In this document: positions 1 to 30,525 of the stretch, in pieces
Numbering within the stretch: position 1 is the first letter of the stretch
Layout of the letters: each line of letters opens with the position of its first letter
DNA from: Amphiscolops sp. MND2022
Taxonomy: Eukaryota
Reading direction: 5' to 3'
NCBI GenBank assembly: GCA_964187785.1
Contig: OZ076411.1
Location: 9,982,001-10,046,000, forward strand
Length of the DNA: 64,000 nucleotides
Position numbers and translations under genes: made by a program
Notes under the pieces: model-generated
What the model was told of the DNA's origin: nothing
What the model saw: the letters and a program-made list of their open reading frames with translations, nothing else
The model's database searches: none

Positions 1-151
1 GAGAGTGAAATAAAGTGAAACAAGTAAAGAAGTCCATGAATATTTCACTGGCAGATTCCATACCATGAACTGTGAATAAAGAGCATGACTAAAGGAAAGG
101 AGAAGATGGAAACATAAAAGAAAGTCTTACATGTAGCCACGACATCCAAGT

Positions 152-218
152 GATAATGATAGTAATAATAATATTAATAATAATAATAATAATATCAATA
201 ATAATAATAATAATGATA
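152..218 (+). repeat. (AAT)n microsatellite inside element 1
   Basis: Directly visible imperfect AAT run. Confidence 0.9.
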
Positions 219-997
219 AGAAGTCCGAGACTCTAAATTATTGGTAGGAGGTAGTAATTAGTCAAAAGAGTAGTTGTTGAGTAGAGGAAGTGAAATAAAG
301 TACATTTGGTAACAAGTAACGTTGTGCCGTCATGATGACTCATCGTCCAATTCGTTAGTATTGGTTGAATATTATTTGATTGTGAACTAGTAATACATTG
401 CCGTCAGGTTGACATTACGTCCACAGCTCTGTGCTTTTGCGTTAAAGACCATTGCCTTCATCAATTGTTTCCTCTTGTAGTATCACTTGAGCTAGACTGT
501 ATTACCTAGTAATCAGGATAGTCTCTCTGACCTTGAGCAACAGATTGATTCAGTCTTAATTTCACCTTTTCCTAACCTCTCACCAGCATAAATTCACAAA
601 TTTTGCTTGCGTTAATTTGAATTGATACCCTCATATTCCACTTTTCTCCATTATTCGTCATCTAGAGGATCTTACTTCACTACACGGCTCTCCAGACACA
701 AATTCCGTGTGAAAGAATTTGGCAAATTCCTATTTGTCTGCTTTACTAAAGAATATCTGGGATTACGTTGTGAAGTCAAACAAAATTCATCTTCAACAGC
801 GTACAACAATTGGTCACATCAATTCTGTTGATCGAATATGGATTCAACATCAGGTTGGTTCTTTTGAAAGTGTTAAAATTAGGCTTGATCAGGGCTCGTA
901 ATTCTAACTAAGTTACTTCCTCCATCGTGAAATGTTTGCTGTCAGCATGAACATTGTGTCAAAAGTATTTCCGGAAATATTTATTGAGCGCGGCTAG

Positions 998-3900
998 ATG
1001 GATTCATATTCAGGAAGTGAACCGCGTTTATTCATCTCATTCCGTTTAGGTGATGAATCTAATGGCCAACCTCTCCAATTGGTCGCTGAAGAAGAAAAAA
1101 TGGATACAACTGATTCCTTTGTAACTGCCTCTTCCACTGTCAATAATTTCCCCACCGTAAAGTCTATGACTCAGGGCCAGAATGATAATGACGACAAGTC
1201 AGATGATCCTGAGAGAGTAGTGGAAGACGATCCCAGTCTGGTGAGTGAGGGAGCAACTACAAGTTTGGGGAACATCACTGTGACGCCTCAAGATCCCCCC
1301 ATCACTATTTCCAACACAGAGGCCACTCCTCCTGCTATTACAGCAACTGGGAACATTGAGAGTAGTAGCACTGATGAGAGTTGTGGGGCTTACATCGCTC
1401 GAAAGTGGGAACAATTGGGCTGTTCGCAAGAAACTGGTACATCGAGTCAGAACGACTGGAGCGGCAAGAAGTTTAGCGAGAGTAGCATGATGGAGCTGAT
1501 GCCCGGTCAGTATTCCCCTACCCAAGATGAATTGGAGTTGGACGAAGCGCCAGAAGTTGCATTCCTGGACTCTCCCAAAGTACTATTGAAAAGCAGTCTC
1601 AAGTCTCGATATGGGCCTTCCGAAGCAAAAGTTCAAAGACTGAGCGTGAAGTTGAGTGCTCCAAGGACTGATTTGTCTGATGCCGCCGCCGGGACGGAAG
1701 GTCTCTCAAGTTCTGAAGCTGGATCCGAGTTCGCTGGGGAATTTGAAGCCCCCAGATTTACAGATCCAACAGCGAACATAGAATCCGATAAGGTAACCAG
1801 TGACGCCGGGTTAGAGTCTGAAGGATTAGTCGGGTCCACAGTGGCTGATGTCCTGTTTGCACCTGCCCAAGCTAACGTATTTAGAGTGAGTGATGTAGCC
1901 AGTAACACGTCAGTAGATTTCCCTGAATCAGCACCTCGAGTCCCTCAACTGTCAGCTAGTAGTCGCGCTTTGATAAAGGAGTATTTTGACGAGGCCACCC
2001 CCATCAGATTGTCTCCTGGGCATCCTACCCTTGCATTGAATGAGGGCCAAGTGAGTAGCTTGTTAAAAGTTGTAGAAGATGAAGCAGTTAAATCGTCGCT
2101 GAAAGCTATGGAAAACTTGGTACAACAAGCAAGTGGAGCCCAGCGGTCACCGACGGCCGTCATTCCGAGGTCGAAGAAAGCAATTTCTCAGACCAGTTAT
2201 GCTGGGTCACAATCTGGTTTGTCATCAGGTCATACAAGCGATACCAGTGGGGGAATCAGAAGTGACGATGATTTCGCCAGTATTGGATATGTCTACGAAC
2301 ATTCCGACCTGGAGAGTCAGCATTTTACTCCTCCCCCAACCGGACCGTCTGGAAGCCGTCAAATTGACCTTGTGTCACCTGAAGCTTCAACCCAGACTGA
2401 TAGCCCCGGAGGACAAACCTTGGCTGCGCTCAAAGCGGAGGCAGTATCGGAAAGGACTAAGTCTGGAACACGCCGAAGACAAAGCAAGAAGCCTACTCGT
2501 CCCAAAGGAGAGAGCAGACATCGGGTGCCTCGTGCCTGTAAAATCATGAAAGAGGCATATTTTAAAGGAATGGAGTGGACGAAGACGTTTGTAGGCGGAC
2601 CAGTTGATCCTCGCTGGAATCCGTACAAATTTTATTGCCAAATCTGTAAAGGCAATATATCAATTTATGGACGCGGCGCTCGAGAGATCCTTCGTCACCA
2701 CTCCACCGAACGTCATCTTCGTAAGGATCAGAGGTGGCGATACGAGCATCTTGCCATAGAAGACCCCGTGAGTGGAAGGATAAAACACCACGTCAGAGGG
2801 AAGGACGGACGACTTCTCACCCCCTACGAGCTTCAATTAGAATTACCCAAGTTCATTGGGGTGGAACTCGTGGACATTGGAGAGAAGCTTCCGTTCTACG
2901 ACGAATACGCTCAAGGAGTTGACTACATGGCTTCTTCATCCGACAACCGTGTTCGAGTCCAGATGTCAGTTCTGGGTAACTACTTGCGAAGCTACGGCGA
3001 TATCAGCACCCTGAGGAACCTCTGGCGGGATGTTGGGGTCGTTGTAAACCATCAGTCGCTCTTCACTGACTTTGACTGGAGTAAAGAACGGTTATCAGTA
3101 AGTATTTTCCTGCCGTTAAATCGACTTAAGGTCTTCCCCAGCCCAGTAATCGTTACCTTTGACCTGCGTTAAATATGATGTTTTCATTCTAGGCTCTCTT
3201 CCACCACCTGTTCCTACAAACTATACATGACATTGGAGACCATGTAGTTGCAGCGGGCGAGTATTCGCTGGAATTTATCAAGCAAGGAGTCTTCCTGTTA
3301 GTGTTCATTCGTTTCTGGAGAAAGGACGAGCTCTGCCGAGTTTTCCTGAAGCGAACCGGCCGGGTCCTGGGACAGTCGGCAGCCGAATTAAGCCTCATAA
3401 GTGACGTTTTGGCAGTTTTCTCACCCGGCCCCAACATTGTCAGTTGCTCCGGTTGCAGCCTGGAAACGATCCAGAAGGTAGATAGTTCTCCGTACAGTAA
3501 GCATGGACTCCAAAACCCTCTCAGATTTGAGGACTTTTCAATCGCGCGGCTAATGCATAAAGAAAGCTATAGCGTCTTTGGACGCATCGACTTCCACTCC
3601 GTTCTCAAGTATCTAATCATCTTCTTGGGGGGAAGCCTCGACTGCGATTGGACCTTGATGACGCCTGTGTTGGCAAAGGTTAGACTCTCTCATTTTAGGC
3701 TTGTAGTCCACGGCTCTTTCAAAGGTACTAATAAACTTGTTGTGTTCAGGCTGTTCGTACTTGCCAAATTGAACTCGCCACTCTCCCAACACTGTGTCAG
3801 GAGCTGCTTGCTAACTGGACAGATGTGACCAAATTCCTGAATGAACATGCACCTCCACATGAAATGATGGGAGTGAGAAAACAAGTAGGTCGCTGCCGTC

Positions 3901-5238
3901 CCGTTGACCTTCAGTCTAATTTCACTTGTTTCAATTTTCCTTGTGTTGTTCTAGCCTCAGAACCTAGAGCGAGCCATGATCTATGATGAGTTGTTTCTGT
4001 GCCGGCTTGAACTCTTCTATCGCTTGGTCAGGGATTGTAAGTATGGTCCACCCGTAGTACGTATCATTTCTTGAGCTTTCGACAATCATAGTGAACGCAA
4101 ATGTTTAGATACCACGAGCTTTGTGCCACATCTGACTGAACGACGGGATCATGGATTCCATATCTACAGGCAGTTATGCCAGTACCTCTTCAAGCTAGGA
4201 AGGCGGTGTATCAAGCCGAAAAGTCTGCCACAGGAAACAGATCTGTCAGGGATTTTGGGTATTGCTATGTCGGATGCCAAAGCCCTAGCCATTCCCGATT
4301 TCATCGCCCGATCGAAGCTCGACCGACGACTGAACGTGGCTTGCAAAGTCAAGGCAGAAAAGGAATTGAGCGACAAGAAGGGCAACCGGGCTAATCTTCC
4401 GAAACTCGTGAAAGAGAACAAAGAAGAGTTTGGGCGACTTGGGAGGAGCTACGTTGCCTACCTTTTCCATGCTGCCCAAAACAACTTACAACTGACCTCC
4501 ACCATTGTGAAAGGATTGGGCTCCTTTGATCTTTACATTATGTATCGTTCTCCCCTTATCCAGGCGCTGAATTGTTTCAAGCATCTTTTCCGCAGCTTTC
4601 ATCTTCGCGGTTACTTTCAAGCCGACGCGGAGTCCATCTATACAGAGGAATATTTATCATTCCTTGACGAGATCCGCAAAGAGATGCCTGATCTGGGCCA
4701 ACCAAGGGTCATAATCCAGGATGCAGTGACTCACATTTCCAATCATGTTGCCTTAGAGTCACGACCCCATCTTGCTCGGATCTTTAAGCTGAGCTGTTTA
4801 TGTTTGGATGAGAGTTATGTTAGTATGCCTACCGTGAAGTTTGGTCCAGTGCGGACAGATGACCCCAAAAGTAAACTTATTGACACCATTCTGCCCGTTC
4901 AATCCTTCTTTATTAACGTGGGGCGGAGCATAGATGCCTTCACTTCAGCTTCTTCAATAGCTAAGTTCCTTTCCTTCGAACCTACGTTCGGGAATACTGC
5001 CTTCTCTGACATGTATAGCCCCTGGGACAGCCTCAATCGCTTCGATCGCTCTGAAATTCTTGCTGCTTTACGTCCGGGCTCAATGAAGAGGAAGACTGAA
5101 AGTCGAAAACTGAGGTTTAAAGATCTGAAAAGCAACAGCAGTTCCAAGAGTCTTCCGCCAGCCAGTGCCAAAGGATCGCCTGTGAGGCGTCAATCAGACA
5201 GCGAGTTGCCCTCTAGTTCATCTATTAAAGACACTTAA
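998..5238 (+). CDS. Antisense 5-exon accessory gene of element 1: join(998..3097,3193..3678,3750..3884,3955..4036,4109..5238), 1310 aa; disordered N-terminus, BED-like zinc finger, putative inactive hAT-transposase-like domain
   Basis: GT-AG introns 3098-3192, 3679-3749, 3885-3954 and 4037-4108 join ORFs 998, 3301 and 4123 into one open frame (3933 nt). Every exon is homologous to the element 2 copy. C-x2-C-x16-HH-x4-H motif (CQIC...HHSTERH). Confidence 0.8.
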
Positions 5239-5465
5239 TTGTACTATATGTACATTTGTTTTTAGTTGTATTTATGTATCTTTCGTTTGTTGGCAGATTT
5301 GAGTTTGTTTATTTTATCGTTATTTGAAGTCTGTTTGTACCGTTGTGTCATTATGATGCCTGTGTTTGATCCATTATTGTGGACTACAAGTCAGTCGAGG
5401 CCCATAAAAAGATAATTGGAGAGTCAAAAGGTGTTGAGTCGGGCCAGTGAATTTACATGTTCTAA

Positions 5466-8400
5466 CTAGTATCTGTATTCGTCAGTAAAGTTGGGGGTAG
5501 GATTGGGACGTAGTTTATATCTCCCTCCCCTAGGACTTTCATTTTCTACAACACAATCATCAGTTTCTTCAATTAATACATCGGGCACGGTTGTATCGTT
5601 CCCCCCGGAAGTTGAAATTTCTGAATTTTCATCTCTAGGAAAGTCCTGATTGGTCAATTCATCGTTTTCAGATTCGGTACTTTGTTGCCGTCTAGCGGAC
5701 TGACGGTCCTCATTGTGTGCGTTTCTTGGGTACTGCTCCGTATTATCAGCCCCAGTATTTGTTTGCCGTCGCGCGGACCGAAGGTCCGCTTCGTTTATTT
5801 CGTTTGAGCGTGAGTCGCTATCAGTATCATCAGCGTGAGCGGCGTCAGTATTTGTTTGCCGTCGCGTGGACCGTAGGTCCAAATCTGTGATTATAGCATC
5901 TTGTTCATCGGAATTGGTAGGGAGTTCATTAGTAACAGTCCGATTTTCAGAATTAGGAGGGAAATCGTCAAAATTGGTTTCCCATGAAATGATGTACAGA
6001 TCATCTTGTGGAATAATAATTTCATCGTCTGCTTGTAAATTTCCTTCGGGACGAATGTCTTGTGGGGTAGTATTTGGAGTGTATTTTCTAAGGCGTATTC
6101 GGTGTAATATCTGCGTTTTGTTAGTACTAAGTTTGCGAACAATATAGTTGTCGTTAGGTAAAACTTTTTCAATGACGTACGGTCCGATCCAACGAAATTC
6201 ACGAAAAGGAATTTTAGAGCCTTGATGGTCAGCTAGGGGTTGTAAAATGAAGCAAAAATCTCCTTGTTGTAGCGGAGCTGCTTTAGCTTTTCGGTCATAA
6301 TATTCCTTGTACTTTAAATATGATTGCATGATGTTTTTCTTTGTTTGATCAATTAGTATTTGCGTACGTCTTTGAAATTCTTCAGCAAAATCAGTCGTTG
6401 GAGTGATCTTTGGGTTAGGGTTTAATCCTAACCGATGGTCTAAGATATTATAGGGTACTCTTCCGTGAAAAATTCGGGTGGGTTCGCATCCAAGACTTGA
6501 ATGATAGGTCGTGTTATAATTAAGGACGGCCAATGGGAGATATTTGTGCCATTGACGCCTGTATTCACCTGATGCCATTTTAAGGTTGCCCTTAAGGCTG
6601 GCATGAGTGCGTTCTAGTTTGCCTATCGTCTGAGGATGCTTTGTGGTCGCGCACCGAAGGTGAATTCCTAAAATTTTGGTAATTTCTTCTAGTAGTTTGG
6701 ACGTAACGGCAGTGCCTTTGTCGGTGATCAGCGTAGTCGGCAAGTAGGAATGTTTTGTCATGATATCAATAATGACCTTTGCCGTATTGACGGCCGAAGC
6801 GTCCGTTACTGGGTAGGCAAATAGATATCTCGAAAACACGTCCAGAGCCGTTATGACATTTTCGTAACCTCCACTTGGGGGTAAGTTGGGCAGAATGTCA
6901 ATTTGTAAGGCATCTTCTGGGCCAAGATCCCATTCAGGTAAATTGAGTAATTCAGGTGTTATGGATGCATTGTTGATTCTTTTGTCTTTTATACAAATTT
7001 CACACCCTTGGACCCACTTTTTGACAATTTTTGCAATTCCAGGAAAGTAGTATTTTCGTCGAATTTCGTGCAGCATTTTTGAGATTCCCGGGTGTTTGTT
7101 CGCGGAACCATGTAGTGATTGAAGTAATTCTGTGACTAGATGTTTCGGTAATAATGCTTGGCGGAATTGGACACTGCCTGTTTCATCGTAGTAGTCTCTG
7201 AAAATGATGTCATCATGTACGGACAGACGGTCAATTTGACGGCAGTAATGTCGGTAGCGCGAATCTTGCTGTAAGATGGTTTCAGAGTATTCGTCTTTTT
7301 GCAGTTTGAGTCGTAATTGATGCAAGATAAGGTCGTTCTGTTGTTCTATAGCCATGGTGGTTGGTTTTGCCAGCTTTTGTATATTTTGAGTTTGGAATTG
7401 TGTATTATCATGAGTGCTAAGATGATCTAACAAAATATCAGGAGGTTGATTCATTGGGTTTGACCTGGCGTCTTGTTTGCGTTTCCAGATTTGTTCTTCT
7501 GTTTCTTCATCATCGTCCGTATAGAAGATCTGTTCCTCTTCAGTAACTCCCGCTGATTGGACGTTGAGTTCAATGGGTGTGGTGGAAATATCTTCTCGTA
7601 TCCGGAGTATGAGTTTTTCTTTGGGACAGATTTCTAGACCTGACAAGTAGTCAGCGGCAGTATTGTTTTTGCCAGGTATATGGGCTATTGTGAAACTGAA
7701 TTGCATAACGTAGTCACACGCGTTCCACAATGTAGGTGGAATGATTTTTGTTTGAAAAAAGCGAGTGACTGACTTGTTGTCTGTTAGTATTATCACCGGT
7801 TTCGGGGTCCCCCAGAAGATATGGCCAAACTCTTTGAATGCAAAGAATATTGCTAGGAATTCTTTCGCATAAATGGACATCTTCAGTTGGGCAGGACTAA
7901 AGGTCTTGGATCCATATGCTACAGGTGCGAAGGCTTTTCGCGTCGAAGTATATTTTTCCATCGGATCGTCCTCGATGAGAACTGCATAACCTGCTGCCGA
8001 AAAACTAGCGTCTGTCATCAGGGCTATCTGTTTATCGGGTAGAGGTTGTTTGAGTGCCAGTTCACAACATCGGTCAAGAGCTTTGTTGATCTCGGTGAAT
8101 TTTTCTAACAGATCGGGTGTCACCATGACTTTGGCATCACTTTTCAATAACTTGAAAAACGGTGTGAGTTTTTCTGAGAGCCTTGGGATGTAGTTACGGT
8201 AGTAGTTCAAGATTCCCAAGTATCTTTGAAGTGCTTTCTTGGATTTAGGGAATTTGGTCTTTTCCAAGAAATTCTGGACCCTGGGTTGTTGTGGCCGCAC
8301 TCCTTCAGGAGTGATAGTGCGTCCCAGGAAGTCGATTTCCTTGGCTCCGAAATGGCACTTGTGCATCGTTAGTTTGAGACCAGCGGTCCTGATGCACTGG

Positions 8401-10643
8401 AACGTTGCTCGAAGGTTGTTGATGAGCTGAGTAGCGTCGTTTGCAGCTATCCCAATATCATCTACGTACTGAGCACATTGGTCAGCTTTTATCACTTTAT
8501 CCAGGTATTCGCGCATAAAGCTCGAGAATGCGGACAGCGCTCTGCTGAGACCTTGGGCAAGTCTACGATAGGCAAAGGTTCTGCTGGCAAAATTGAATGC
8601 CAGCATCTCGATTGACCTCTGGTCAGCCATCTGAAGGCAGTGGTATGCTTGAGAACAATCAAGTTTGCAAAATAATCGTTTGCCTGCCATGTGCTGCGCA
8701 GCATCCGTTAGTGTGCTGACAGGATGGTTGTTGTTGATATAATCGTCGGAAATCAGGTTGTTGATCTTTCGGAGGTCGACCAGGAGTCGAAGTTTGCCGT
8801 TAGGTTTTTTCTGGGCAAAAATGGGACTTGCATATTTGGAAAATGGGAGAGTTGTTATAATCCCATATCGATGTAATAGGGCTAGTTCTACAAGGATATC
8901 TTCTTTGAGGTTGATAGGAGTAGGTAAGCTTTGACTATAGGCAGGAGAGTCGTCTTTAGGGGTCAGAGTGACCTTGAAGTCCTCGTTCATACCTATATCA
9001 AAGCGGTGTCGTGCAAAAATATCGTGAAATTCAACAAGTAATTCTTCAATTTGGGCAATTTCGGCTGGATTTAGCGTCGAGTCTGTCCAGTCGAAGTTAG
9101 CAAGAAATTGTTTCCGCGATTCAGGGTCATCCTGAGGGTTGAGTTTCTCTAAATCTTGGAGATTTCGTAGTTCCCTAAGGATTCTTTGTTGTATTGGTGT
9201 GTGAGTTTGGGGATCTCCTGGTTCGTCTGGAGTAGGGAACCAATAGTTCTCACTATCATCGCTAGCTTTCGGAGATTTGATCAGGCTACTGGCATAATAG
9301 GCAGCATTTTCCGTGTTATCCTTCAAAAGGTGCCAAGTGGTCACAGGATCAATGGGTTTGACGTATTTCATCTGCTCTGGTGTGAGGACAGAGAAATTGG
9401 CAATGTGCGCACCTCTTTTGAGGGTGTACGGTTGGTCAGTGAAGTTGTTGACATGGATTGATACCTGACCTTGGGTCAGTGTGACTAGAGCGGCGCAGAA
9501 GGTTATATCACCATCTTCTGCAAGGTCGTTGCTCGGTTGAATAATTCCAGTGACGTTTGTGTCGTCATATAGTTGTGAGAACATGGAAACCATATGTCTG
9601 TCGTTGGGGGGAATAGTTATGTCCTCCCGTGCACAGATAGGATCCATGACGTTAGTGTACTTGTGGTCAGCTGTTTTCAATTGCATGGAGAAGAAAGGGA
9701 AGTTTAAAACTCCTTGACGCATGTCCAGTATGGTATTGTTCCGTTGCAGGAACGAGAGACCAATTAACGGACTTGTGAGTTTTTCCATAACAATGAAGAT
9801 CTCGTGGAAATCGATGTCCCCGACCTCGAATTTGAGTTCAACGGTGCTCTTTGGAGTCTCCAGCTGTCCATTGGCTACCATAATCTGGAAGTTGGGTGCC
9901 GGGCCCTCTTTAATTATTGACTGAGGGGCTAACAATCGGATTTTACGTAGATCAGCTTCTGGGATAGCGCTAGATACGGCTCCCGTGTCTACAAGGCCAT
10001 CTAATGTTAGTTCGCCAAAATCCATGGGGAAGTAGAGCATCCGTCGTTTGTATTTGAGTCCCAAATTGGTCGTCAACGGGACGTAGTCAGGTTCACCGTT
10101 TCGTGAGATCAGCGTGTTCACAAAGCGCTCTTCCACTGTTGCCGTCAATGTGACCAAAGGTCCATTGTGTGGAAGTTGTTCGGTTATTGCCTCCTGGATT
10201 GGTGAATTGGTGTTAATCCACACATTTTGCCAGGGGTCAACAGAGGCCGTGGATAGTTTTGTGTTCAGCATCCGATCAATGTGGGGTTGATCATGTTCGA
10301 TATCTGCAATGTTTTTGGTAAAGTTTTTGTAGAAGTGTAGCTGATGTTGGTTGTAGATTTGAATGTCCCAATAGGGATCGAATCCGAAGTCCGGGTCAGG
10401 ATAATATGGGTTGTAGTTATCGATTAGGGGAAGGGGGCGAATGGTCGTAGTATTAGAGTGCTGTCTGTCGGACTGAAGGTCCGGGTTGTGTAAGTGAGTA
10501 GGCGAATGCTTCACCTGCTGCTGCCAGTCAGCTGATGAATTTTCTTTAATGGAAGAGTAATATTCTGTATAATATATAGTAGGAGGATCAGATATTATAT
10601 ATTGTCTGATACGTAATTTTTCATTAATATGGAGTCGTGGCAA
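5466..10643 (-). CDS. pol: Pol polyprotein of element 1 (protease, dUTPase-like spacer, RT, RNase H, integrase), expressed by -1 frameshift
   Basis: LVDTGA protease, QYVDD RT, TDAS RNase H, H-x6-H..C-x2-C and D,D,E integrase motifs. The ORF track start is TTG, not ATG. Confidence 0.95.
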   Translation of the reverse strand: MPRLHINEKLRIRQYIISDPPTIYYTEYYSSIKENSSADWQQQVKHSPTHLHNPDLQSDRQHSNTTTIRPLPLIDNYNPYYPDPDFGFDPYWDIQIYNQHQLHFYKNFTKNIADIEHDQPHIDRMLNTKLSTASVDPWQNVWINTNSPIQEAITEQLPHNGPLVTLTATVEERFVNTLISRNGEPDYVPLTTNLGLKYKRRMLYFPMDFGELTLDGLVDTGAVSSAIPEADLRKIRLLAPQSIIKEGPAPNFQIMVANGQLETPKSTVELKFEVGDIDFHEIFIVMEKLTSPLIGLSFLQRNNTILDMRQGVLNFPFFSMQLKTADHKYTNVMDPICAREDITIPPNDRHMVSMFSQLYDDTNVTGIIQPSNDLAEDGDITFCAALVTLTQGQVSIHVNNFTDQPYTLKRGAHIANFSVLTPEQMKYVKPIDPVTTWHLLKDNTENAAYYASSLIKSPKASDDSENYWFPTPDEPGDPQTHTPIQQRILRELRNLQDLEKLNPQDDPESRKQFLANFDWTDSTLNPAEIAQIEELLVEFHDIFARHRFDIGMNEDFKVTLTPKDDSPAYSQSLPTPINLKEDILVELALLHRYGIITTLPFSKYASPIFAQKKPNGKLRLLVDLRKINNLISDDYINNNHPVSTLTDAAQHMAGKRLFCKLDCSQAYHCLQMADQRSIEMLAFNFASRTFAYRRLAQGLSRALSAFSSFMREYLDKVIKADQCAQYVDDIGIAANDATQLINNLRATFQCIRTAGLKLTMHKCHFGAKEIDFLGRTITPEGVRPQQPRVQNFLEKTKFPKSKKALQRYLGILNYYRNYIPRLSEKLTPFFKLLKSDAKVMVTPDLLEKFTEINKALDRCCELALKQPLPDKQIALMTDASFSAAGYAVLIEDDPMEKYTSTRKAFAPVAYGSKTFSPAQLKMSIYAKEFLAIFFAFKEFGHIFWGTPKPVIILTDNKSVTRFFQTKIIPPTLWNACDYVMQFSFTIAHIPGKNNTAADYLSGLEICPKEKLILRIREDISTTPIELNVQSAGVTEEEQIFYTDDDEETEEQIWKRKQDARSNPMNQPPDILLDHLSTHDNTQFQTQNIQKLAKPTTMAIEQQNDLILHQLRLKLQKDEYSETILQQDSRYRHYCRQIDRLSVHDDIIFRDYYDETGSVQFRQALLPKHLVTELLQSLHGSANKHPGISKMLHEIRRKYYFPGIAKIVKKWVQGCEICIKDKRINNASITPELLNLPEWDLGPEDALQIDILPNLPPSGGYENVITALDVFSRYLFAYPVTDASAVNTAKVIIDIMTKHSYLPTTLITDKGTAVTSKLLEEITKILGIHLRCATTKHPQTIGKLERTHASLKGNLKMASGEYRRQWHKYLPLAVLNYNTTYHSSLGCEPTRIFHGRVPYNILDHRLGLNPNPKITPTTDFAEEFQRRTQILIDQTKKNIMQSYLKYKEYYDRKAKAAPLQQGDFCFILQPLADHQGSKIPFREFRWIGPYVIEKVLPNDNYIVRKLSTNKTQILHRIRLRKYTPNTTPQDIRPEGNLQADDEIIIPQDDLYIISWETNFDDFPPNSENRTVTNELPTNSDEQDAIITDLDLRSTRRQTNTDAAHADDTDSDSRSNEINEADLRSARRQTNTGADNTEQYPRNAHNEDRQSARRQQSTESENDELTNQDFPRDENSEISTSGGNDTTVPDVLIEETDDCVVENESPRGGRYKLRPNPTPNFTDEYRY

Positions 10644-10645
10644 AT

Positions 10646-12442
10646 CTAGTTTTTTGAGTTTTTAAGGATAGAAGTGGTGGGTTTATTGGTGGGGTCATCA
10701 CGACTACTGGTCGTGTCGTCATCCTTTGGACTATCCAATTTGAGGTTTTTGGGCTTGAGGTGGGCTCCGGCGCCTTTCCAACATCTCTCCGCCGGGTGAT
10801 TGGTTTTGTCACAAGTCGGGCACTTTGGGTACTCTTTTTTGGTACTCGAGCCTTCGTTGCGTTTTTGCTCTTCCTTTCGTTTTAGTTTTCGGCAATCGTC
10901 TTTGACATGTCCAGGTTTTTTGCAGTAGTTGCAAGTTATTCCTGGGTCAATGCCTGATGAAAGGAGTCCTTGACCCGGTCGTGTGGCTGTCGGGGCTGTT
11001 GACATTGTGGGAACGGGAATGTCGTCGCCTTCCTCAAGTCCATTCAACTCCAGTTCTCGTTCGAGATGAGTGACAATTTCTTCATAGGTGGCATTCTCTA
11101 ATCGCGCCATGTTGACTGAACGTTTGAGTTTCGGTGGGAGTTTTGCGTATAGCAGACTGTCAATCATGGCTTGTGCGTGCTCGCCAAAGGCTTTTTCGGC
11201 GCCCTGATTGAGCTCCTCGAGAAAATCGGGCAATTTCATTGTGTTTGGGTCAAATACCAATTTGTGCCATTTATGTTTGGCAGTTGCCTGGGATTCAGGT
11301 TTGACATATTTCCTACGGAACACAGCTAGTACGTCTTCTAAGGTTTGTCTATTGGCCGAACTGATGTTGCGGAAGGTTTGCAGGGCATTTTTGCGTAACA
11401 GTGAATGAAAGTGATTAATTTTCATTGCTTCCGTCATCTCGGGTTGCATCTTTATCACCGTGTGAAAAAGGTCTTCAAACAGTTCGAATTTTTCAGATTT
11501 GCCGTCAAATGTAAGTGTGGCAGTATTGACTGGTCGTACCATCAGTGTTTGTGCTGATGATTTGTTGTTCATTCCCATGATGACATCGGCAAGTCTGTTT
11601 ATGGGGTCTAATGGTGTTTGGGGCTGCATTTCCCGGTCATTGATAGAGTTTGAGGGAATCTGTGCCGGGAGAGTGGTATCTAATGTGTCATCGTTGACGC
11701 ATTGTTGGTGGGGAATTTTGTTTCTGGACTGCGTGGGACGTCCGGTCAGAAATTCAGGGACTACATGTGGAGTAAGGTTGGCTCCTGTCACCATGTCATA
11801 ACCTACATCATTTTCACTTTGTTCAGAATCTTCCAAACATTCCATTTGATGATTTGAAAGGTTATTTGCTGTTGTATTTAGTCCAGGGAAATTCTCTCTT
11901 GAGTCCTGGACCTGTTGGCTGAATTTACTTTTATGCCGTCCATATGACCCAAGGTCCAAAGTTTGGTCCATAGGGACGTTTCTACTCGGATGCCGTCCAT
12001 CTGACCGAAGGTCCAATTTCGCGTTCTTAGGCTCCCTATGATTTACTATGACATTTTCGATGCTCGGTAGTATTTTTTCATCGATAGCGGAGTTTATTAC
12101 CTCCATAATATGGGAATTTAGATCAGATTTCATTTCTTCCAATTTCCTCGACATCTGTGAAGAAATTTCTGAACTAATTGCTCTACTAGTTTCTACTGTA
12201 ATTTCACTATTCTCACTCAAATTAGTATTCAAAAGAGATCTATAGTTGCTTTCTTCTTGTCTGAAACCTTGTTGCCGTCCACTTGACTCAGGGTCAATTT
12301 CTATTTGATCTACTGTGTTTTGGTCTCTAATCTCGCTGTTTGAGTAATTTCCAAGCATCACATCTAAATTTTCAATATCTGACATTACGTCAGACTGTCT
12401 AGAACGTTTCTCTCTTGCTTTCTGCTTTCTAGTTGAAGGCAT
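10646..12442 (-). CDS. gag: Gag of element 1 (ATG at 12442, inside the LTR)
   Basis: CNYCKKPGHVKDDC and CPTCDKTNHPAERC knuckles. FDGKSEKFELFEDLF capsid-like block shared with element 2. Starts MPSTRKQKA like the other copies. Confidence 0.92.
   Translation of the reverse strand: MPSTRKQKAREKRSRQSDVMSDIENLDVMLGNYSNSEIRDQNTVDQIEIDPESSGRQQGFRQEESNYRSLLNTNLSENSEITVETSRAISSEISSQMSRKLEEMKSDLNSHIMEVINSAIDEKILPSIENVIVNHREPKNAKLDLRSDGRHPSRNVPMDQTLDLGSYGRHKSKFSQQVQDSRENFPGLNTTANNLSNHQMECLEDSEQSENDVGYDMVTGANLTPHVVPEFLTGRPTQSRNKIPHQQCVNDDTLDTTLPAQIPSNSINDREMQPQTPLDPINRLADVIMGMNNKSSAQTLMVRPVNTATLTFDGKSEKFELFEDLFHTVIKMQPEMTEAMKINHFHSLLRKNALQTFRNISSANRQTLEDVLAVFRRKYVKPESQATAKHKWHKLVFDPNTMKLPDFLEELNQGAEKAFGEHAQAMIDSLLYAKLPPKLKRSVNMARLENATYEEIVTHLERELELNGLEEGDDIPVPTMSTAPTATRPGQGLLSSGIDPGITCNYCKKPGHVKDDCRKLKRKEEQKRNEGSSTKKEYPKCPTCDKTNHPAERCWKGAGAHLKPKNLKLDSPKDDDTTSSRDDPTNKPTTSILKNSKN
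10649..10655 (-). promoter_or_regulatory. -1 ribosomal frameshift heptamer A AAA AAC at the gag/pol junction, element 1
   Basis: TCA AAA AAC TAG ends gag and the -1 frame continues into pol. Same heptamer as element 2. Confidence 0.8.
11781..11793 (-). promoter_or_regulatory. Primer binding site TGGTGACAGGAGC, element 1
   Basis: TGG immediately follows the LTR-terminal CA. The 13-mer is identical in element 2. Confidence 0.8.
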
Positions 12443-13347
12443 TTTCAAGGAATGGATTTGATTCCAACAGTGAATTGATCAACAGTAACAAATCAAACAG
12501 TTTTGTATCGTAGCGTTTTCAATCAATGAATGAATGTCCCTTCTTATTACAAATTCCGCGTATATATAGTTTATACTGCATGACACGCAATATTTTGCGT
12601 GTCAGGAACTAAATTTAGGGTGATATCATTCTAAATATAGCCCCGATTTCATTATTAGGTCACTAGTCCTAAAAATAGACTGAGGGTTTTGACATTACGT
12701 CACACAAATGAATAGATATAAATAGCATCAAACAAACAGTGGGTATCTTTACATGTATTCAAATTCAGGTTAAAATCAACCTTTCATGCATTGGTAACAT
12801 CAATACTCAATGAAATTCTAAATATGACCATGCGTCAGCATGACTGCAATGATAGACTGGTACTTTACTCTGATTGGTCAACAAGTACTTGTGACCACAC
12901 GTCGGTTTGACTGCAGTAGAGTACTAGTTAATTAACTAAGAAAAGTGTCTTAAGGTACTCTTTAAACACCGTTTAACAGCACTTGAGTTACTTTGCTAAG
13001 TATTGCGTCGTTAACTAAGTGATGTACTTTAGGTCCAGATTAATTGCAAGTAATTTCATCAATGGGAAATTCTAAATAGTAACAAATCAATAATAGCAAT
13101 TGAATAAATGCACAGATTAAATGCTGTCAGTTTGACCTTTGGTCTAAATAGTAACATCGAAATTGCATGTTTAGCGTTAATAATTCGGTCATTACATGCA
13201 TGAAACAAATATTAAACTATCAAAATAAATGCTAAAGTTCGTTTCAGAATTTGTTCTAGATAGGTAGTACCCCGGGGGCTGGTGGCGTCTCATTACCTTC
13301 TGGCATCATTTGGTATAGGATGCCGTCACAAGCGGCAGCTTGCGACA
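11794..13347 (-). repeat. 5' LTR of element 1 (1,554 bp)
   Basis: Bounded by TG..CA and abuts the PBS. Its terminus TGTCGCAAGCTGCCGC matches the element 2 terminus TGTCGCAGGCTGCCGC. The partner LTR is not in the window. Confidence 0.8.
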
Positions 13348-15047
13348 GTAATTAATCATACGAATGATTTTCACCACAAAAAAAACGAGACAGTGGATTC
13401 AGACAGTCTGAATGCGTAAATCTATATACATAATCATTTTCTGTCCAAGAATTGATTTAAAAACAGCCTAAACATTGCAACTTTATTGCCTGAAGCAATT
13501 GACCTTTCCACACATGAACATTTTTACAATTTTTGTTTCTTAAAAATTAGGATTAGCCCGAGAAATTGGAGACAAAGCAATTTAGGGAACTCAAGTTGAT
13601 TATTTTTCTTCGGATTGCTACAGATTTCTTGGATTGACAACTCTCAGTAAATTGAAAAAGCGATTTAATTGACTTTTTACGGTCTGCTATTGAAATTGAT
13701 GATATGATTACCACGGAGATTCAAAACCAAATTTGTTTTTCTGATAACCTGATTTCAATGATGACGTTGCATAGACAAAGTCATGCAAAGTATATTCAGA
13801 AAAATCAGAAGTCGAAAAGAATTGCTGTCGAAAAAATTGGGCATTAGGTTTATCTAATCCAAAGGAATTCATGTTTTCAGTCGGCAAAATAATTGAACTA
13901 TGATTACTTAAGTATTGCTCTGTACTAACTTGAGTCATAAAGAATTTCTGTCAAGCTTTTTCATTTTTTGAAAATTTGCATCTTTTGGTTTCGTGAATTT
14001 TGCTTAGCGTGTTATCTAGTCGCATGTAGGCTGGCCATGGTGAAAAATGTACAGTCATTTATTCCGAGAATTCAGAAAAAAGATCCTGTTCCGAGACAAA
14101 CACGTCAAAATAGTTTTTTTTACGTTCGCTGTGACATGATGCTAAATACGTAACCGACCTAAAATGGCAATGTACCTGCCATTTATGTCAAATTCGAGTA
14201 CGGAGCTCTGTTCAAAAGCTTTGAAAATAGCGTTTCTTCTTTCAAACTGTAAATTAAAAATTTTCCAGACTGGGTAAACAATTTACTTTCTTGGAGGAAA
14301 CTTTCGTTTTTTTCTTGAAATTTATTTTTGATCTTTTTATTCAGAATTTTGTTAATTTTTAAAAACATGTTTAGAATTCATAAAATTTATAATTGAGTTT
14401 CGGTATATTGAGATGAGTGCCTTTTAAATTCCACGAGTAAAACAACTTGAATTTCAAGTTGATTTAGATTTCTCCAAGAGAAACAACGTTCGTTTTTTGT
14501 AATCATATTTGTGCATTACTTCTCTTTTTCTGTATTAAATCTCATCAATTGGTGAGACAAGAGATGGTATTTTCGACTTTGCAGTCTTAGACTTTTTTCT
14601 GTATAGGTCATCTGTCATTTTCAACTAGCAGAGTTCAACATAAATTGAAGAGAATTCATTATAACTTGTAATCTCTGGATTATTAGTAGAGCTTTGATTG
14701 AAAAACCCCTTGAGATTATCTTTATTACTTTCCTGAATTTTTGATAACGCTAGTCAGGAAATACAAGAATGATGATAGACTCTTGTTCATTAATGATTTG
14801 ATCTTAGGGATGATTTAATATTGGGAAAGCGTGATCAGATTGTTTGACAATGTCTTGTTAACAGCAAAACTTTAGCATCTCTAGAATAATTTCTCAGAGC
14901 TTGGGAAACTAATCCATCAACAAATAACGCTGGAGATAATTTGACAGTTAATAAATTAGAATGAAGACGCTTGTCCGAAAATGTTGGGCTCAGGAGTTGC
15001 TTCTATCATTCAATATTCAGTTAACAAAAGTTGTCAAAACAACCACT

Positions 15048-15530
15048 AACAAGCCGGGACCGGCCCAAGTTGGGGCCATATCTAAGGCTCAAAAATAGCA
15101 AAAGGACTTCAAAATGTCAAAGTATTGGTGAAATCGGAACCTTTTATGAAAGAAAAAAAGTTGGGAAAAAAAGTCTCACAATGCCGAAAAAAACTGAAAG
15201 AGGACTCTGGGATTTTTCAACATCCATTCTGTTGCAAAACTCCAAAAAGTTTGAAGGGGGACCCTTTGGTGGAAAAAAAATTGAAAAAAGTCACACAGTC
15301 CCGAAAAAATTTAAAGGGGGGACGCTTTGGTCTCGTCCGGTATTGTATGTTACGCGGGAAACCTTTTTGGTTCAGTTCCTTGGGCCAACAGGTACAATTT
15401 GGCGTCTTCTCAAAATTTTGTAGAACTTTTGGTACAACTATTTTGGTCACTTCAGGTGGTCTTAAAAAACACTGACGAAAAGTCATGGCTATAGTCGACT
15501 CTTTTTTTAAAAAAAGCGCCGACTAAAAAA
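15048..15530 (+). mobile_element. Short interspersed repeat, DINE-1/Helentron-HINE-like family (copy A)
   Basis: Begins AACAAG, internal AAAGGGGGACCCTTT-type subrepeats, ends CTATAGTC..AAGCGCCGACTAAAAA. At least 7 copies in the window. Confidence 0.6.
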
Positions 15531-16694
15531 TAGCCACTTGAGTTTTGCTCGAATTGCAAGCTGTTTTTTCAAAAAAGCTTCATTTGTGGCTTGTTATTTT
15601 TTGGTCTCATAATTTTTTTACTTTTTTGAAATTGATGAAATTAATGGGTTTAAATCAATAATTTTTTTGCTAAAAATTCTCTTTATTCGATCTTTACCGG
15701 CAGGAGTTGGTCGTGTTTAGATCACTTATTCTCAAAGAAGACCAATCGGACACATATTTTTGGGTACTTCATTCGTACTTTCATAGACCATCCAATAGTC
15801 TCTTTAAGTTTCGAAGACAGAGGCTGCATCAAACTTGATTCGTTCACCGAATTTCCTCCAAATGTGTTGGAAGTTTCGTATAACTTTTGAGAAACGATGA
15901 AAATTTCATTTGAATTAACTTTTTAGAAAATTTGAGTTTCCATCGTGATAGCGTCGGAGTTTTTTACATCAGATGAGGAAACGAACTTTTGGCCATACGG
16001 AGATCTTCAGCTCAAGCAACTATCGTGAGTCAGTGCCGCTTTTTGGCATTGTGAAGATGAGTTTGGCTCTGACGGGCAAAGTTTGAAGGGCCCACTTTAT
16101 TAGACGACAGTCTTCACACACTGGTACTAATGCATTTCAATCACTAGAATCACTCATCTGAGAACCATATGAGGCTTGACTTTTTTTCGAGTAACTGTTC
16201 TTGTGGGGAAAAGATTCGATTAAAATCCATTAAGGAATTTTATTTTCCTCTCAAGCAAAGTTCAAGTTTCAGCTTCCAGCGGTCGAAAAACGAGTTGACC
16301 ACTTGAGAACAAGACGCCCGTTGAGCACTGCGAAATTTCCACCCCAAACTAGTTCAGCGACATCACATTCTTCAAACTAAAAACTACGAACTGTCGAAAA
16401 ATGTCCAAAAAAACTTGAAAAGCTTCCCATCTTTTGGTTCATTTTCCCCCTTTTCATGAAAAAAATGTCTCCTTATACAAACGTATGCTAAGTAGCTAAT
16501 TGTAGACCAATTGCATGGAACAACCGAAAGTTGCCATGAAAGAACAAGTTTAAAAAATCTGATTTCCCTATTGAATAGTAGGGTTTTTGTCGCTGATAGT
16601 TTGAACTCTGTTGATACTTAAACCTACCAGAACATTCAAAAACTGTACAAACTTTGGTCGAAATTTGGGGTTTTTATAAACAATTAAAATCAAA

Positions 16695-17209
16695 TTTTTA
16701 GTCGGCGCTTTTCGTAGAAAAACGCGGACTATAGTAGTGACTTTTTTTAGGACCAACGGAGTGACAGATTTCATAAGCTTTATTAGCTGCGTCCACTATT
16801 TGCCACACTTAGCATAGAGCCACTTAGCATAGAGGTTAATTATCATAGTTTTTGATGTCTGCCAAGCAGAAGGACGTGGGTTCGAGTCTCACCCTTGACC
16901 AAGTTTTTTGTGCATGTAATTTTGGCTTTGTGAGACTTTTTTTCGCAATTTTTTAATGTCTCCAAAGGGTCCTCCCTTCAATTTTTTGCTATTTTGCAAC
17001 AGAATGGACGTTCAAAAAATCCCAAAGGGCCCCCCTTTTACAATTTTTGGCACTATGCGACTTACCGGAGACTTCAAAAAAAATTTCGAATTTTTTTCAA
17101 TTTTTATCTCCTGCGGGTGCTTTAGAAGAGAATACTTTGACACTTTGAAGTCCTTTTGCTATTTTTGAGCCTTAGATATGGAGCCGACTTGGGCCGTTCC
17201 CGGCTTGTT
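16695..17209 (-). mobile_element. Same short repeat family (copy B), with a tRNA-like A/B-box segment inside
   Basis: TTTTTAGTCGGCGCTTTT...GCCGACTTGGGCCGTTCCCGGCTTGTT termini. GGTTCGAGTC B-box near 16879. Confidence 0.6.
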
Positions 17210-17996
17210 TTAAAACACGTAGACACACGGAAACTTCCATCAGTATGCTCACCTTCTTTCTTCACTTTCTTAGCTGTCAAGTTTTTGATACCGATATCTA
17301 AATGAGTTATAAGTAGGACTCCAGAATTACGGAAATCAGGATACAAGTCTTATAAAAGTAGTTTTTATTCAGATCATTGTGTAGTTGTAAGAGCAATAGG
17401 CTGGTGTTGGACTGGAATCAATGTTCGAATCTCTCTCAAGACTCCACTGCTATGTTATGAAGTTGTTGCTACCTAGGTAATTGTGTGGTCATGAGAGATA
17501 ACGCACACAGCGGAGAAAACAAGACTGAAAAGAGCAACTGCAAGCTATCAGATCGTTGTGACCTAGAGCAAGTTACTTCGAAAGCGTAACTTCGAAGTCG
17601 ACCTTTTCTTGATTTCTTGGGTGCAAATATGGTGCCATAGCTTGTTTTGTTTAAGGATATTTCGTGGGTATGAGTTTTCACAAGGGTCAACAACAAAAGA
17701 TTTAGCAACTTAGCATACTCCTGAATAAAGAAATGTGATTTTTGATTTTTCAAAAAATTGTAAAAACGAACAGAAAAGTGCCAGTTGACACAACGTTTTT
17801 TTTAAATTTTTCATGCTAGATTCTTTTTCCCTTCGGAACAAAATTATATGGAGTTGCTAAAAGTTGCTTTAAAAGTTTTATGAAATTGATAAAAGTTTAA
17901 AAACAGTGTGCTTTGCTTATTCAAGAAACTTAGGTTTTTGAAATTTGAGCGGGCGCACAAAGGTGGTTTTTTTTCCCACAGACACGTATTGATGAT

Positions 17997-18591
17997 TTTT
18001 TTAATCGGCGCTTCATGACGTGAAACGCGACTATCATAGTGACTCGTCTTTTTTCAATTCTCACGAATTGACCAAATTAGTTCTCAAAAGTTATACAAAA
18101 TTTTATGGTCCCAAATTGGAGCATTTGGCCTCGCGAACTGAAACAAAAAGTTTTTCCTCTTCTTCGCGTATCATACTACCATAGTATCAACCCATAGTAT
18201 CATCCGGGCGAGACTAAAGGGTTTCCCTTTCAGTTTGTTTGGCATTGGGAGACTTTTTCAAAAAAATTTCCCAAAGGGTCCCCTTTTCAATTTCTTTGGA
18301 GTTTTGCGACAGAATAGATGTTGAAAAATCCCAAAGGGTCCCCCTTTCAGTTTTTTTGGCATTGTGAGCCTTTTTTGGATTTTCTTACCAAAGGGTTAGC
18401 AACAATGGATGTTAAAAAATGCAAAAGGATCTCCCTTTTAGCGCGCCAGTGGCACTCGTTTGGTTTTTTCGTGAGTTTGATACTCTTTTTGTGAGTTTGA
18501 TACTTTGAGTTTTTTGGCACTTTCATGCCCTTTTGCTGCTATTTTTGAGCCTTATATATATGGCGCCGACTTATACCGTTCCCGGCTTGTT
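17997..18591 (-). mobile_element. Same short repeat family (copy C)
   Basis: Ends GGCGCCGACTTATACCGTTCCCGGCTTGTT. AAAGGGTCCCCTTT subrepeats. Confidence 0.55.
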
Positions 18592-19374
18592 AATTTCAAC
18601 ATGTAGCATTTGCCTTTTCAAAACACGACGATCCGCTCACGATGATTTGCGAAATTTCGTTAGTTTCAACTACTCCATCCTTACTGCTGCTCGTAAAGCC
18701 AACCGAATTGTATAGACAGCATAATAGCATAATAAACACTTGAAAAATACTGCATTTCCAAAAATTTCGGCAGTTCGAAAACAATCGCCGAGAAGTTCGA
18801 AGAATCGTGAAAAAAAGTTATTGACAACATACAAGAACATGCAAAATGTATCCAACGTTAGGGCAGTAACGCAAAATGAGCAAATGTTAGGGCATAGAGA
18901 TTAACTTTGGTACAAAAAAAACATCTCTTTTGAATGTCCGAATTGAAAGTTTTTAGGTAGAATTTTTCAACAAGACGCGTTTCCATTAGAAACATGTTTT
19001 GCACACTGAGAGCTTCATTTGGGAAAAGATCCCGAAAGTGTAAAAATTAGACCACGGTGGGACTCGAACCAAGGATCTCTCGCGTAGCAAATGCATGAAA
19101 TGGGTTCAAGTTGGCCTTTTTTCATTCTTACTGGTTAAGCTTTCGGAACTCAAGAGATTGTGGGGTTCAATTTATCTATTAAACTTTACCGCCGTTAATG
19201 GAAATATAATCATTTTTAACGTCTACTTGTTTCTGAACTTTCATTTGTCAGTTTCGCAAAGAAAGTATTTCCTAAGATGAATTCAATTACAAGATGATGA
19301 GTTAATTTGTAATGTGGTACATAGTAACTCTCGGAATCAGATTCAATCAGAAATAGAGACCGACAAAACACCGC

Positions 19375-20058
19375 ACTTCCCATCGCAGCCCCATCGGTGG
19401 CTACCGCGGTGGTAATGACACATTTTGTGGTGGCCAGGGGTGGACCATCGGTGGTAGAAATATTTTCCCCACCGGTGGCCACTACAAAATGGGTTTTTTT
19501 TTCTGAAAAAACCACAGGAATAAGATCTAGAATTATCAAAAAACAACTGGAATTAGATCTAAAATTATCGAAAAACCACTGGAATAAGATGTAAAATCAC
19601 TGAAAAAACACCGGAATAAGATCTAAAATCACTGAAAAAGCACCGGAATAAGATCTAAAATCACTGAAAAAACACCGGAATAAGATCTGAAATCACTTAA
19701 ATGAAACCGGATAGAGGGGGGAATAAGATCTAAAGAAAAACTCACTGTATAACCAGTGGAAAACGTTTTTCGGACACGATCTGATTCTGCAAGCAGGGTT
19801 TACAGAAGCTTCAGAACCGTTCCTGAAAATTTTCCCATTCTGTTTGGTTTTGATGCGTCTAAATGTATTTCGTGTAGTGAATCTTCAGTTGCTAGAAATT
19901 TTGAACGAAATTTTCATTTCCGAAATTTTCGAATTTTCCACCGATGGTCCATCGGTGGACCACCGGTGGGAAAGCTTCCATGTAATCTAATTTTCCCTCA
20001 CCGGTGGCCACCGGTCGTCCACCGATGGCCAGTGGTGGGTTACCATGGGTTGTCAGTG
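19375..20058. repeat. MITE-like element with CCACCG(A/G)TGG-rich ends and an internal 32-bp tandem array (about 19505-19735)
   Basis: Palindromic CCACCGGTGG/CCATCGGTGG clusters at both ends. ACCGGAATAAGATCTAAAATCACTGAAAAAAC recurs at 19610, 19642 and 19674. Confidence 0.55.
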
Positions 20059-20295
20059 ATCGACCCTTTTTAAATTCAATTTATGAATAAGATTTATGGA
20101 GATTATTTTGGAAGAGGGAGCTTTGAGAGGATTCTTACAGGCTGTAAAGCATCATGTCAGTGAATTTCCGAGTAACAATGATTTTCCAATATAACCAATT
20201 TTTTGTTCTGAAAAGTTCCACGTTATGCAATTTAACTTGAATTTTCTTGAAGACTAAATTATGCAAGCAAGAAACGCACCAAATTTCGGTTTAGT

Positions 20296-30339: not shown

Positions 30340-30525
30340 ATGTACATAATGTACATTTGCCATTCTTGACTTTCGTTTGTAAATTTGTTTTCTTTATTTT
30401 ACATGTCTTCTGTTTGTATAGTTATATAGTTAGTCTTGCCAGTAAAATGAAGTCAGAGTGGTCCCAGTAAAACACATGCCTTCTTGGGCAATAAAATAAG
30501 TAGGGACACAATTTAACATTTCTGA

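Follow-up and report, generated by a model that had tools for sequence, protein, structure and literature searches.

A predicted five-exon gene on the antisense strand of Ty3/gypsy-type retrotransposons

Antisense genes and introns in described elements

Retrotransposons with long terminal repeats (LTRs) are usually treated as intron-free two-gene units, and introns lying on their sense strand are stripped by retrotransposition. Deltaretroviruses carry HBZ-type genes on the opposite strand, which start in the 3′ LTR, contain a single intron and give rise to a spliced mRNA and to a small, nuclear basic leucine zipper (bZIP) protein. Here we describe a stretch of 64,000 nt of contig OZ076411.1 (assembly GCA_964187785.1, positions 9,982,001 to 10,046,000; hereafter the window, which has no N anywhere) containing two LTR retrotransposons of Ty3/gypsy type, E1 and E2, each of which carries a predicted multi-exon gene on the strand opposite to gag and pol. 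Like the HBZ type, this would be a coding gene opposing the gag-pol-env direction of a reverse-transcribing element. Unlike it, the gene starts about 1.8 kb inside the element, behind a further sense open reading frame (ORF3), and has four introns and a predicted product of about 1300 aa, in which no bZIP domain was found with Pfam, which sets it apart from the HBZ type.

The closest described systems are found in plants. Conserved antisense ORFs are located between pol and the 3′ LTR in Tat/Retand elements, maize Grande (gene23) and rice RIRE2, where they are suspected of a nuclear, DNA-binding regulatory role and where the Grande gene has its own promoter (PMC7264820, PMC11963269, PMC4408406). 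These ORFs are described as uninterrupted, introns never being mentioned (PMC7264820, PMC11963269), and retroviral antisense genes have been cited as an analogy for them (PMC11963269). The gene in our window resembles the Tat/Retand-type ORFs in lying antisense between pol and the 3′ LTR and in being conserved within a family. By contrast, the TRP28, PMD or SMC-like domains of the plant products are absent here (Pfam, E up to 5, 57 family members), and the four introns, the predicted length of 1310 aa and the further sense ORF3 that follows the gene distinguish it from the plant ORFs, and its host is apparently no plant.

Other elements show some of these features separately. The Drosophila telomeric element TART produces antisense transcripts with multiple spliced introns (PMC1636488); it is, however, a non-LTR element, for which transcripts are described and not a conserved long coding gene. 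Juno, Vesta and other LTR retrotransposons of bdelloid rotifers have captured and kept a third gene, but with env, DEDDy and GDSL domains that are absent from our elements; antisense is mentioned for them a single time, with regard to small RNAs, and introns not at all (PMC5408684). Plant Ogre is an LTR retrotransposon that retains a spliceosomal intron (PMC4408406). This intron separates gag-protease from pol on the sense strand and is only partly spliced, whereas the introns described here are antisense. In our full-text search of the literature, with Repbase, Dfam and GyDB outside its scope, no LTR retrotransposon turned up that is described as having a coding antisense gene with several introns. 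To our knowledge, no such gene has been described.

Gene structure, conservation and exchange

In E1 the gene extends over positions 998-5238 of the plus strand and comprises five exons. Exon 1 (998-3097, 700 codons) encodes an N-terminus of 17 conserved residues, an acidic Ser-rich disordered region, a basic patch and a CCHH finger. It is followed by exon 2 (3193-3678, 486 nt), exon 3 (3750-3884, 135 nt), exon 4 (3955-4036, 82 nt) and exon 5 (4109-5238 with the stop codon), the latter encoding a helical C-terminal domain and a Ser-rich tail. The four predicted introns are short and bounded by GT and AG: intron 1 (3098-3192, 95 nt, phase 0, GTAAGT..TAG), intron 2 (3679-3749, 71 nt, phase 0), intron 3 (3885-3954, 70 nt, phase 0) and intron 4 (4037-4108, 72 nt, phase 1, GTAAGT..TAG). 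Their donors read GTAAGT, GTTAGA, GTAGGT and GTAAGT, and a pyrimidine-rich tract is present ahead of every acceptor. A first-pass annotation of this DNA had proposed that the plus-strand ORFs of E1 splice through these introns into a single frame; re-joining the exons indeed yields 3933 nt encoding 1310 aa plus a stop codon, with zero internal stops.

E2 contains the same arrangement at 26245-30339 (plus strand), its five exons being separated by introns at 28012-28100, 28596-28719, 28855-28949 and 29032-29183 (89, 124, 95 and 152 nt, respectively). We could confirm that these introns lie at codons homologous to those of E1 and in the same phases (0, 0, 0, 1), that exons 3 and 4 again measure 135 and 82 nt, that exon 3 shares 17 of 45 residues (37.8% identity) between both elements, and that the start codon at 26245 is a conserved start. 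The common exon structure claimed for the E2 gene was thus correct, whereas this particular copy turned out to be broken: its joined exons are not a multiple of three owing to a single frame change in the last exon, while its gag and pol are intact.

Protein searches with exon 1 and exon 5 retrieved 36 and 140 clusters, respectively, with identities from 99% down to about 30%; among the matches listed (120 of the 140 clusters), those of exon 5 comprise 880 members. When 1.84 billion proteins were scanned in full with HMMER, 1012 representatives matched, and no relatives were detected in the JGI metagenome contigs (two scans) or IMG/VR that we scanned. We fetched thirteen loci (L001-L013) and compared the introns of 13 copies (E1, E2, L001-L004, L005a, L007-L011 and L013). 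Where the annotation had seen two divergent families, these sequences point clearly to at least eight deeply diverged lineages carrying the antisense gene within one genome. The layout is identical in L001-L004, L007, L008, L010 and L011, with the gene on one strand and pol and gag on the other. All full copies examined have the gene beside pol and gag, and this uniform layout, together with the position of the E2 copy inside both LTRs and the target-site duplication (TSD), bears out that the gene travels with the element.

GT..AG was found at 46 of the 47 intron ends inspected, at homologous positions across the 13 copies. Exons 3 and 4 measure 135 and 82 nt without exception and exon 2 between 481 and 495 nt (mostly 486), and the introns are 64 to 161 nt long. 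Between lineages, introns are no more alike than shuffled sequences, whereas the exons are conserved. The joined frames are intact in E1, L002 and L007 and have one frame change each in E2 and L001.

Three copies are precisely devoid of one intron, the frame being kept. In L011, introns 1, 2 and 4 are present and intron 3 is precisely absent, so that exons 3 and 4 are fused in frame into 217 nt; the pol of this locus is 79% identical to that of E1, and its cluster has 1547 members. The same fusion occurs in L013 (ERZ1742291), a locus with no nucleotide-level match to any other, and in L009 (also ERZ1742291) intron 1 is precisely absent, with exons 1 and 2 fused and intron 2 kept. According to the established view of how introns are lost, an intron is removed precisely, with the frame kept, through recombination with a spliced mRNA that has been reverse-transcribed. 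These single-intron absences probably constitute the strongest indirect evidence of splicing, since exact in-frame removal marks the sites as splice sites, and intron gain there would mark them equally. The interruptions thus combine the features expected of spliceosomal introns (GT..AG ends with a pyrimidine tract, kept positions and phases, drifting length and sequence, and precise in-frame absence), and the initial claim of an intron-bearing gene gains considerably from the 13 copies in which the positions are kept.

Ten database proteins spanning the first exon junction were considered as possible cDNA evidence and discarded, both of the traced ones being genomic: L010 reads through an in-frame intron 1, and L009 is truly without it.

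Some of the fetched loci have particularities of their own. L012 has a pol (10001-14890) that is 60% identical, with 640 cluster members, and antisense ORFs at 14887-17877 on the minus strand; its antisense gene is only 22-24% identical, too weak for placing introns, and is without the disordered N-terminal part of about 500 residues. An identical exon-1 protein (P0031) is found in L005 (10019-11851) and L006 (3244-5076), with ORF3 before it and neither exons 2-5 nor pol following; these copies go back either to a derivative that suffered the deletion and then spread or to a segmental duplication. A second five-exon copy, complete but degenerate, lies at 1319-5413 of L005. Downstream of the antisense gene of L003, pol-like ORFs are doubled (14538-21512, two integrase and two reverse transcriptase/RNase H sets), which indicates tandem or nested elements.

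Purifying selection acts on the antisense gene to an extent comparable with gag and pol. Between E1 and L007, which are about 4% different, the joined frame has accumulated 61.5 synonymous and 35.5 nonsynonymous changes, a ratio of nonsynonymous to synonymous rates (dN/dS) of 0.164; the ratio is 0.088 in pol and 0.112 in gag. Of the five other exon 1 frames, four have values of about 1-2, and the fifth, on the minus strand, has 0.245, probably as a result of third codon positions that fall on those of the proposed frame. Between lineages, the proportion of synonymous differences is saturated (pS 0.72-0.88), the nonsynonymous one (pN) being 0.10-0.35. The annotation had described a selected gene, and these values, with a dN/dS far from 1 between close copies, agree with it. 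The E1 spacer upstream of the gene diverges faster than the genes (0.11 substitutions per site relative to L007). Over seven copies, identity to E1 is 0.76-0.99 for pol and 0.41-0.99 for the antisense protein; with this lower range, the antisense gene evolves faster than pol.

A promoter-like block precedes the gene in both elements. In E1 it spans 885-1002 (plus strand), ends at the start codon and reads TTGATCAGG ... CTTCC ... TTCCGGAA ... ATGGA; in E2 it is located at 26133-26249 (plus strand), upstream of the ATG. We aligned the 150 nt ahead of the ATG in nine lineages whose coding sequences are only 35-50% identical, and found invariant GGTTGG, TTGATCAGG and CTTCC motifs, along with an invariant palindrome, TTCCGGAA, some 25 nt ahead of this codon. 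The first 17 codons are also conserved, with variation partly at third codon positions. The composite motif occurs twice in the window, both times at the gene starts, with none expected from shuffles, and at the equivalent place in six further loci. Since the motif is found only at the two gene starts and low dN/dS only in the proposed frame, chance is excluded for the antisense gene. GGAA-core palindromes are typical of ETS-type promoter motifs of animals. The annotation had also inferred separate transcription of the gene; this idea is supported only indirectly, by the conserved promoter-like block.

In E1, 227 nt separate the convergent stop codons of pol and of the antisense gene, and the interval 5239-5465 (plus strand), convergent with the end of pol, is probably the 3′ untranslated region (UTR). 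TGTACA-containing repeats are situated straight after both antisense-gene stops (5235-5288 and 30340-30360) and have ATGTACATTTG in common; in E1 a 27-nt unit is repeated twice in the post-stop region (5235-5288), and E2 has an AATAAA at 30490-30495, just ahead of the pol stop. The repeats and the AATAAA are possible 3′ UTR signals.

The comparison of E1 with L001 suggests strongly that the antisense gene is exchanged as a cassette between element lineages. Both are 94-100% identical in gag and pol and 89-100% in the spacer, and only 59-77% identical over positions ~1060-5450, that is, the body of the antisense gene plus its downstream region. The edges of this mosaic are sharp, one lying just past the conserved first codons and the other at the conserved block ending pol, and only recombination explains this pattern, as synonymous sites are saturated within the stretch.

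In the spacer, positions 401-1050 of E1 are 98-100% identical to L001 and about 11% diverged from L007, the reverse being true of the gene body; E1 looks like a recombinant of L001 and L007 types. A second candidate mosaic, L002 versus L008, was rejected, the difference being merely graded (64-78% in the antisense gene and mostly 81-87% in pol, with windows of 77-96%).

Product, proposed mechanism and competing explanations

The predicted protein begins with the 17 conserved residues, which precede about 480 acidic, Ser-rich, poorly conserved and disordered ones. After this part come the basic patch, which resembles a nuclear localisation signal, and a finger with invariant C547, C550, H567/H568 and H573, whose region adopts a beta-beta-alpha shape in a low-confidence AlphaFold model of E1 residues 500-700 (predicted local distance difference test, pLDDT, 47.6). 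From the finger to about residue 1250 the protein is largely helical, the exon-5 model having a pLDDT of 60, with about 80 for a helical core at residues 14-227. L012 and many database representatives begin at a methionine right before the finger; the disordered N-terminal half therefore appears to be lineage-specific. The sole Pfam match is a sub-threshold one of 13 residues to zf-C2H2_ZN292, in 24 of 25 members (best E 2.4e-4, 19 bits for a cut-off of 27), and sequence, profile and exon-5 fold searches detected no homologue outside these elements. With such a composition, the product might be a nuclear nucleic-acid-binding factor acting in trans on element expression or on host control, a proposal that we make only tentatively. 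A BED finger followed by a hAT transposase was also considered as a model for the protein and is not supported, given that no BED, hAT or transposase match was found in Pfam, in PDB profiles for exons 1 and 5 or with the exon-5 fold.

Taking these data together, we estimate a probability of roughly 0.8 that the element carries a real antisense gene that is spliced and under selection. The plus-strand ORFs would then be the exons of a protein-coding accessory gene belonging to a Ty3/gypsy-type family of about 16 kb. The gene would have an internal promoter of its own, within the spacer that it shares with ORF3; its transcription would run on the strand opposite to the genomic RNA and end near the pol stop codon, the host spliceosome removing the four short introns. 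The RNA that is reverse-transcribed would be the complementary strand, on which the introns would never be seen as introns; lying antisense to that RNA, they would be inherited by every new copy. Occasionally, the spliced antisense mRNA would itself be reverse-transcribed and then recombine with the element, producing copies short of exactly one intron, and template switching between co-expressed lineages would exchange the whole gene as a cassette. ORF3 could be expressed either through a subgenomic splice or from a shared bidirectional promoter. The chances seem about even for the fuller picture of a non-plant, probably animal, Ty3/gypsy lineage having a four-gene genome similar to those of complex retroviruses, in which a separately promoted orphan antisense gene with four introns, its mRNA occasionally copied back to give precise losses, is shuffled as a cassette, which is how an accessory factor should behave when it conflicts with control by the host.

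Several points weigh against the existence of such a gene or against what we propose about it. E2, the youngest copy in the window with a single LTR mismatch, has a broken antisense gene; having inserted recently in this state, it indicates that the gene is not needed in cis for insertion. The copies in L003, L004, L005a, L008 and L010 are degenerate. Every database relative is a genomic ORF call, and all come from two ENA assemblies (ERZ25074608 and ERZ1742291). The intron differences fit loss or gain alike, the lineages being star-like, with 35-50% identity in exon 2. Concerning the product, Pfam searches with the window ORFs and 57 family members (two sets of 25 and 32) at E up to 5 gave no family above threshold, PDB sequence profiles for exon 1 and exon 5 no match, and Foldseek with the exon-5 model against PDB and BFVD nothing below E = 1; its function is read from sequence features, and of two structure models one has low confidence.

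If the gene did not originate with the element, it could descend from a foreign insertion, either a zinc-finger transposase-like mobile-element gene or an intron-bearing host gene, that the retrotransposon has since co-opted as a module. Such an origin would suit the arrangement of a zinc finger ahead of a large domain, the presence of introns, the opposite orientation and the sharp edges of a discrete cassette. Nevertheless, we regard it as unlikely: neither of the two sets of 25 and 32 members has a transposase, BED or hAT match in Pfam at E up to 5, sequence searches of the PDB were empty, the fold of the C-terminal domain had no match, and no copy was seen outside the context of the element, even the pol-less copies of L005 and L006 retaining ORF3.

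It is quite improbable that the antisense strand acts essentially as RNA, its transcription regulating or small-RNA-silencing the sense transcript and its coding capacity being secondary. The gene is convergent with pol, and with 227 nt between the stops in E1 the two transcripts could overlap; an RNA-level role of antisense transcription has moreover been discussed for plant elements (PMC7264820). Such a role alone leaves unexplained, however, that selection is specific to one frame (dN/dS of 0.16 versus ~1-2 in four of five other frames and 0.245 in the fifth), as well as the kept intron phases and exon lengths and the invariant Cys and His residues.

Passive hitch-hiking of a captured fragment with no role for the element has very little to recommend it. 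The recent insertion of E2 despite its broken gene would agree with a dispensable passenger, yet a broken young copy is to be expected of any element gene acting in trans, and a passenger would not be expected to show low pN with saturated pS in at least eight deep lineages, a kept exon structure and upstream block, and a dN/dS similar to that of gag. Least credible of all, and extremely improbable, is that the gaps are not introns and that each ORF is either translated on its own or a decayed remnant of a single old ORF: although intron 1 of the degenerate L010 is in frame, stop-free and was read through by the ORF caller, GT..AG recurs at 46 of 47 ends, the phase-1 split codon is kept, exons 3 and 4 (135 and 82 nt) are too short to stand alone and yet conserved as peptides, and single gaps have been deleted precisely with the frame kept.

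A spliced antisense gene of this kind would imply that a retrotransposon can keep spliced genes protected on its antisense strand, a natural counterpart of the intron-in-antisense design used in retrotransposition reporters, and would extend the idea of antisense accessory genes, so far one of plants and deltaretroviruses, to a further part of the tree. Antisense-mRNA reverse transcription and recombination between lineages, both hard to observe, would have left their records in the intron-free copies and in the cassette mosaic. An ORF-based annotation pipeline will break a gene of this kind into unrelated fragments, which is what happened in the ENA ORF calls.

The host elements and the rest of the window

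Both elements have gag and pol on the minus strand. The elements of this family are about 16 kb in size, the complete E2 measuring 15,959 bp. E2 is flanked by a 5-bp TSD, AAACC (22654-22658 and 38618-38622), and bounded by a 3′ LTR (22659-24380, minus strand) and a 5′ LTR (36896-38617, minus strand) of 1722 bp each, with TG..CA ends and one mismatch between them. A primer-binding site, TGGTGACAGG, adjoins the 5′ LTR and a polypurine tract, AGGGGGAG, adjoins the 3′ LTR. Its pol (30526-35751, minus strand, 1741 aa) and gag (35754-37457, minus strand, 567 aa) are intact ORFs. E1 is truncated by the left window edge, its 3′ LTR being outside the window, although in place in the 96%-identical copy L007. 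Its 5′ LTR (11794-13347, minus strand, 1554 bp, TG..CA) has the primer-binding site TGGTGACAGGAGC on its inner side, and this site is common to E1 and E2. The gag ORF of E1 (10646-12448, minus strand, 600 aa) encodes a DUF1759 domain and a zinc knuckle and has a frame open upstream into the LTR, and its pol (5466-10643, minus strand, 1725 aa) encodes protease, dUTPase, reverse transcriptase, RNase H and integrase. An AT-rich spacer (1-884, plus strand), with (ATA)n at 153-219, lies between the antisense gene and the sense ORF3 beyond the left window edge.

The Pfam order in both pols is gag-asp_proteas, dUTPase, RVT_1, RT_RNaseH, RT_RNaseH_2, Integrase_H2C2 and rve, and the closest solved structure is the Ty3 Gag-Pol polyprotein (7q5b, E 1.5e-45). 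By this domain order and by their LTRs and primer-binding site, together with the TSD and polypurine tract of E2, E1 and E2 are of Ty3/gypsy (Metaviridae) type. The 120 best pol relatives, those listed, are all ENA ORFs, and the pol of the window itself is also present in the ENA ORF collection, on a contig of 170,898 nt. Read in the sense of the element, the layout is LTR, gag, pol, opposite-strand gene, small sense ORF3 and LTR, a gene set that is more complex and retrovirus-like than usual for such elements. Both gag ORFs read open through the primer-binding site into the 5′ LTR, over 218 codons in E1 (11794-12448) and 187 codons in E2 (36896-37457), and in both the first ATG past the LTR is formed at the junction of the LTR-terminal CA with the TGG of the primer-binding site.

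ORF3 encodes about 270 aa and is present in all lineages, with 30-40% identity; it occupies the interval from the antisense-gene start to the 3′ LTR and terminates inside the latter. In E2 (24295-25131, minus strand, 278 aa) it is divergent with the antisense gene and ends within the 3′ LTR. Further copies lie on the minus strand in L001 (7685-8485), L002 (7997-8815), L003 (7962-8786), L008 (7831-8631) and L005 (7461-8453) and on the plus strand in L011 (20598-21383). The ORF3 product is acidic at its N-terminus (SSDEE type) and contains an SPxSPP motif as well as the invariant stretches CxxCG and, near the C-terminus, GVSQAAACDG; it had no match in Pfam.

No rRNA, tRNA or Rfam matches were found in the window. 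The sole candidate host gene is an intronless ORF of 404 aa (45561-46775, plus strand) with a sub-threshold match to the rhodopsin family of seven-transmembrane receptors (29.1 bits, cut-off 30.5) and no relative in PDB. This ORF and the GGAA-core promoter motifs weakly suggest an animal as host, and nothing else in the data does so. At least six copies of a short interspersed repeat, about 150-480 bp long, lie in the host DNA that separates and follows the elements, with inverted copies at 15048-15530 and 43024-43509 (84%) and related pieces at 16920-17211, 18204-18396, 40627-40783 and 55003-55156. Two inverted arrays of a 16-nt tandem repeat, about 350 nt apart, occupy 20281-20484 (~10 copies) and 20815-21053 (~12 copies), and a separate 32-nt array is located at 19503-19701. 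Between 52000 and 56000 the plus strand is strongly A-rich (AT skew 0.30-0.38), and ten ORFs in this A-rich and repeat region (near 52000-62901) had no Pfam match. The same region includes a direct repeat (55800-56398 and 58795-59393, spaced by 3 kb and 90% identical), a tandem duplication of 1.06 kb (60572-61644 and 61636-62700, 84%) and, at 62753-62901, a 150-nt piece that is 79% identical to part of the E2 LTR (23114-23263).

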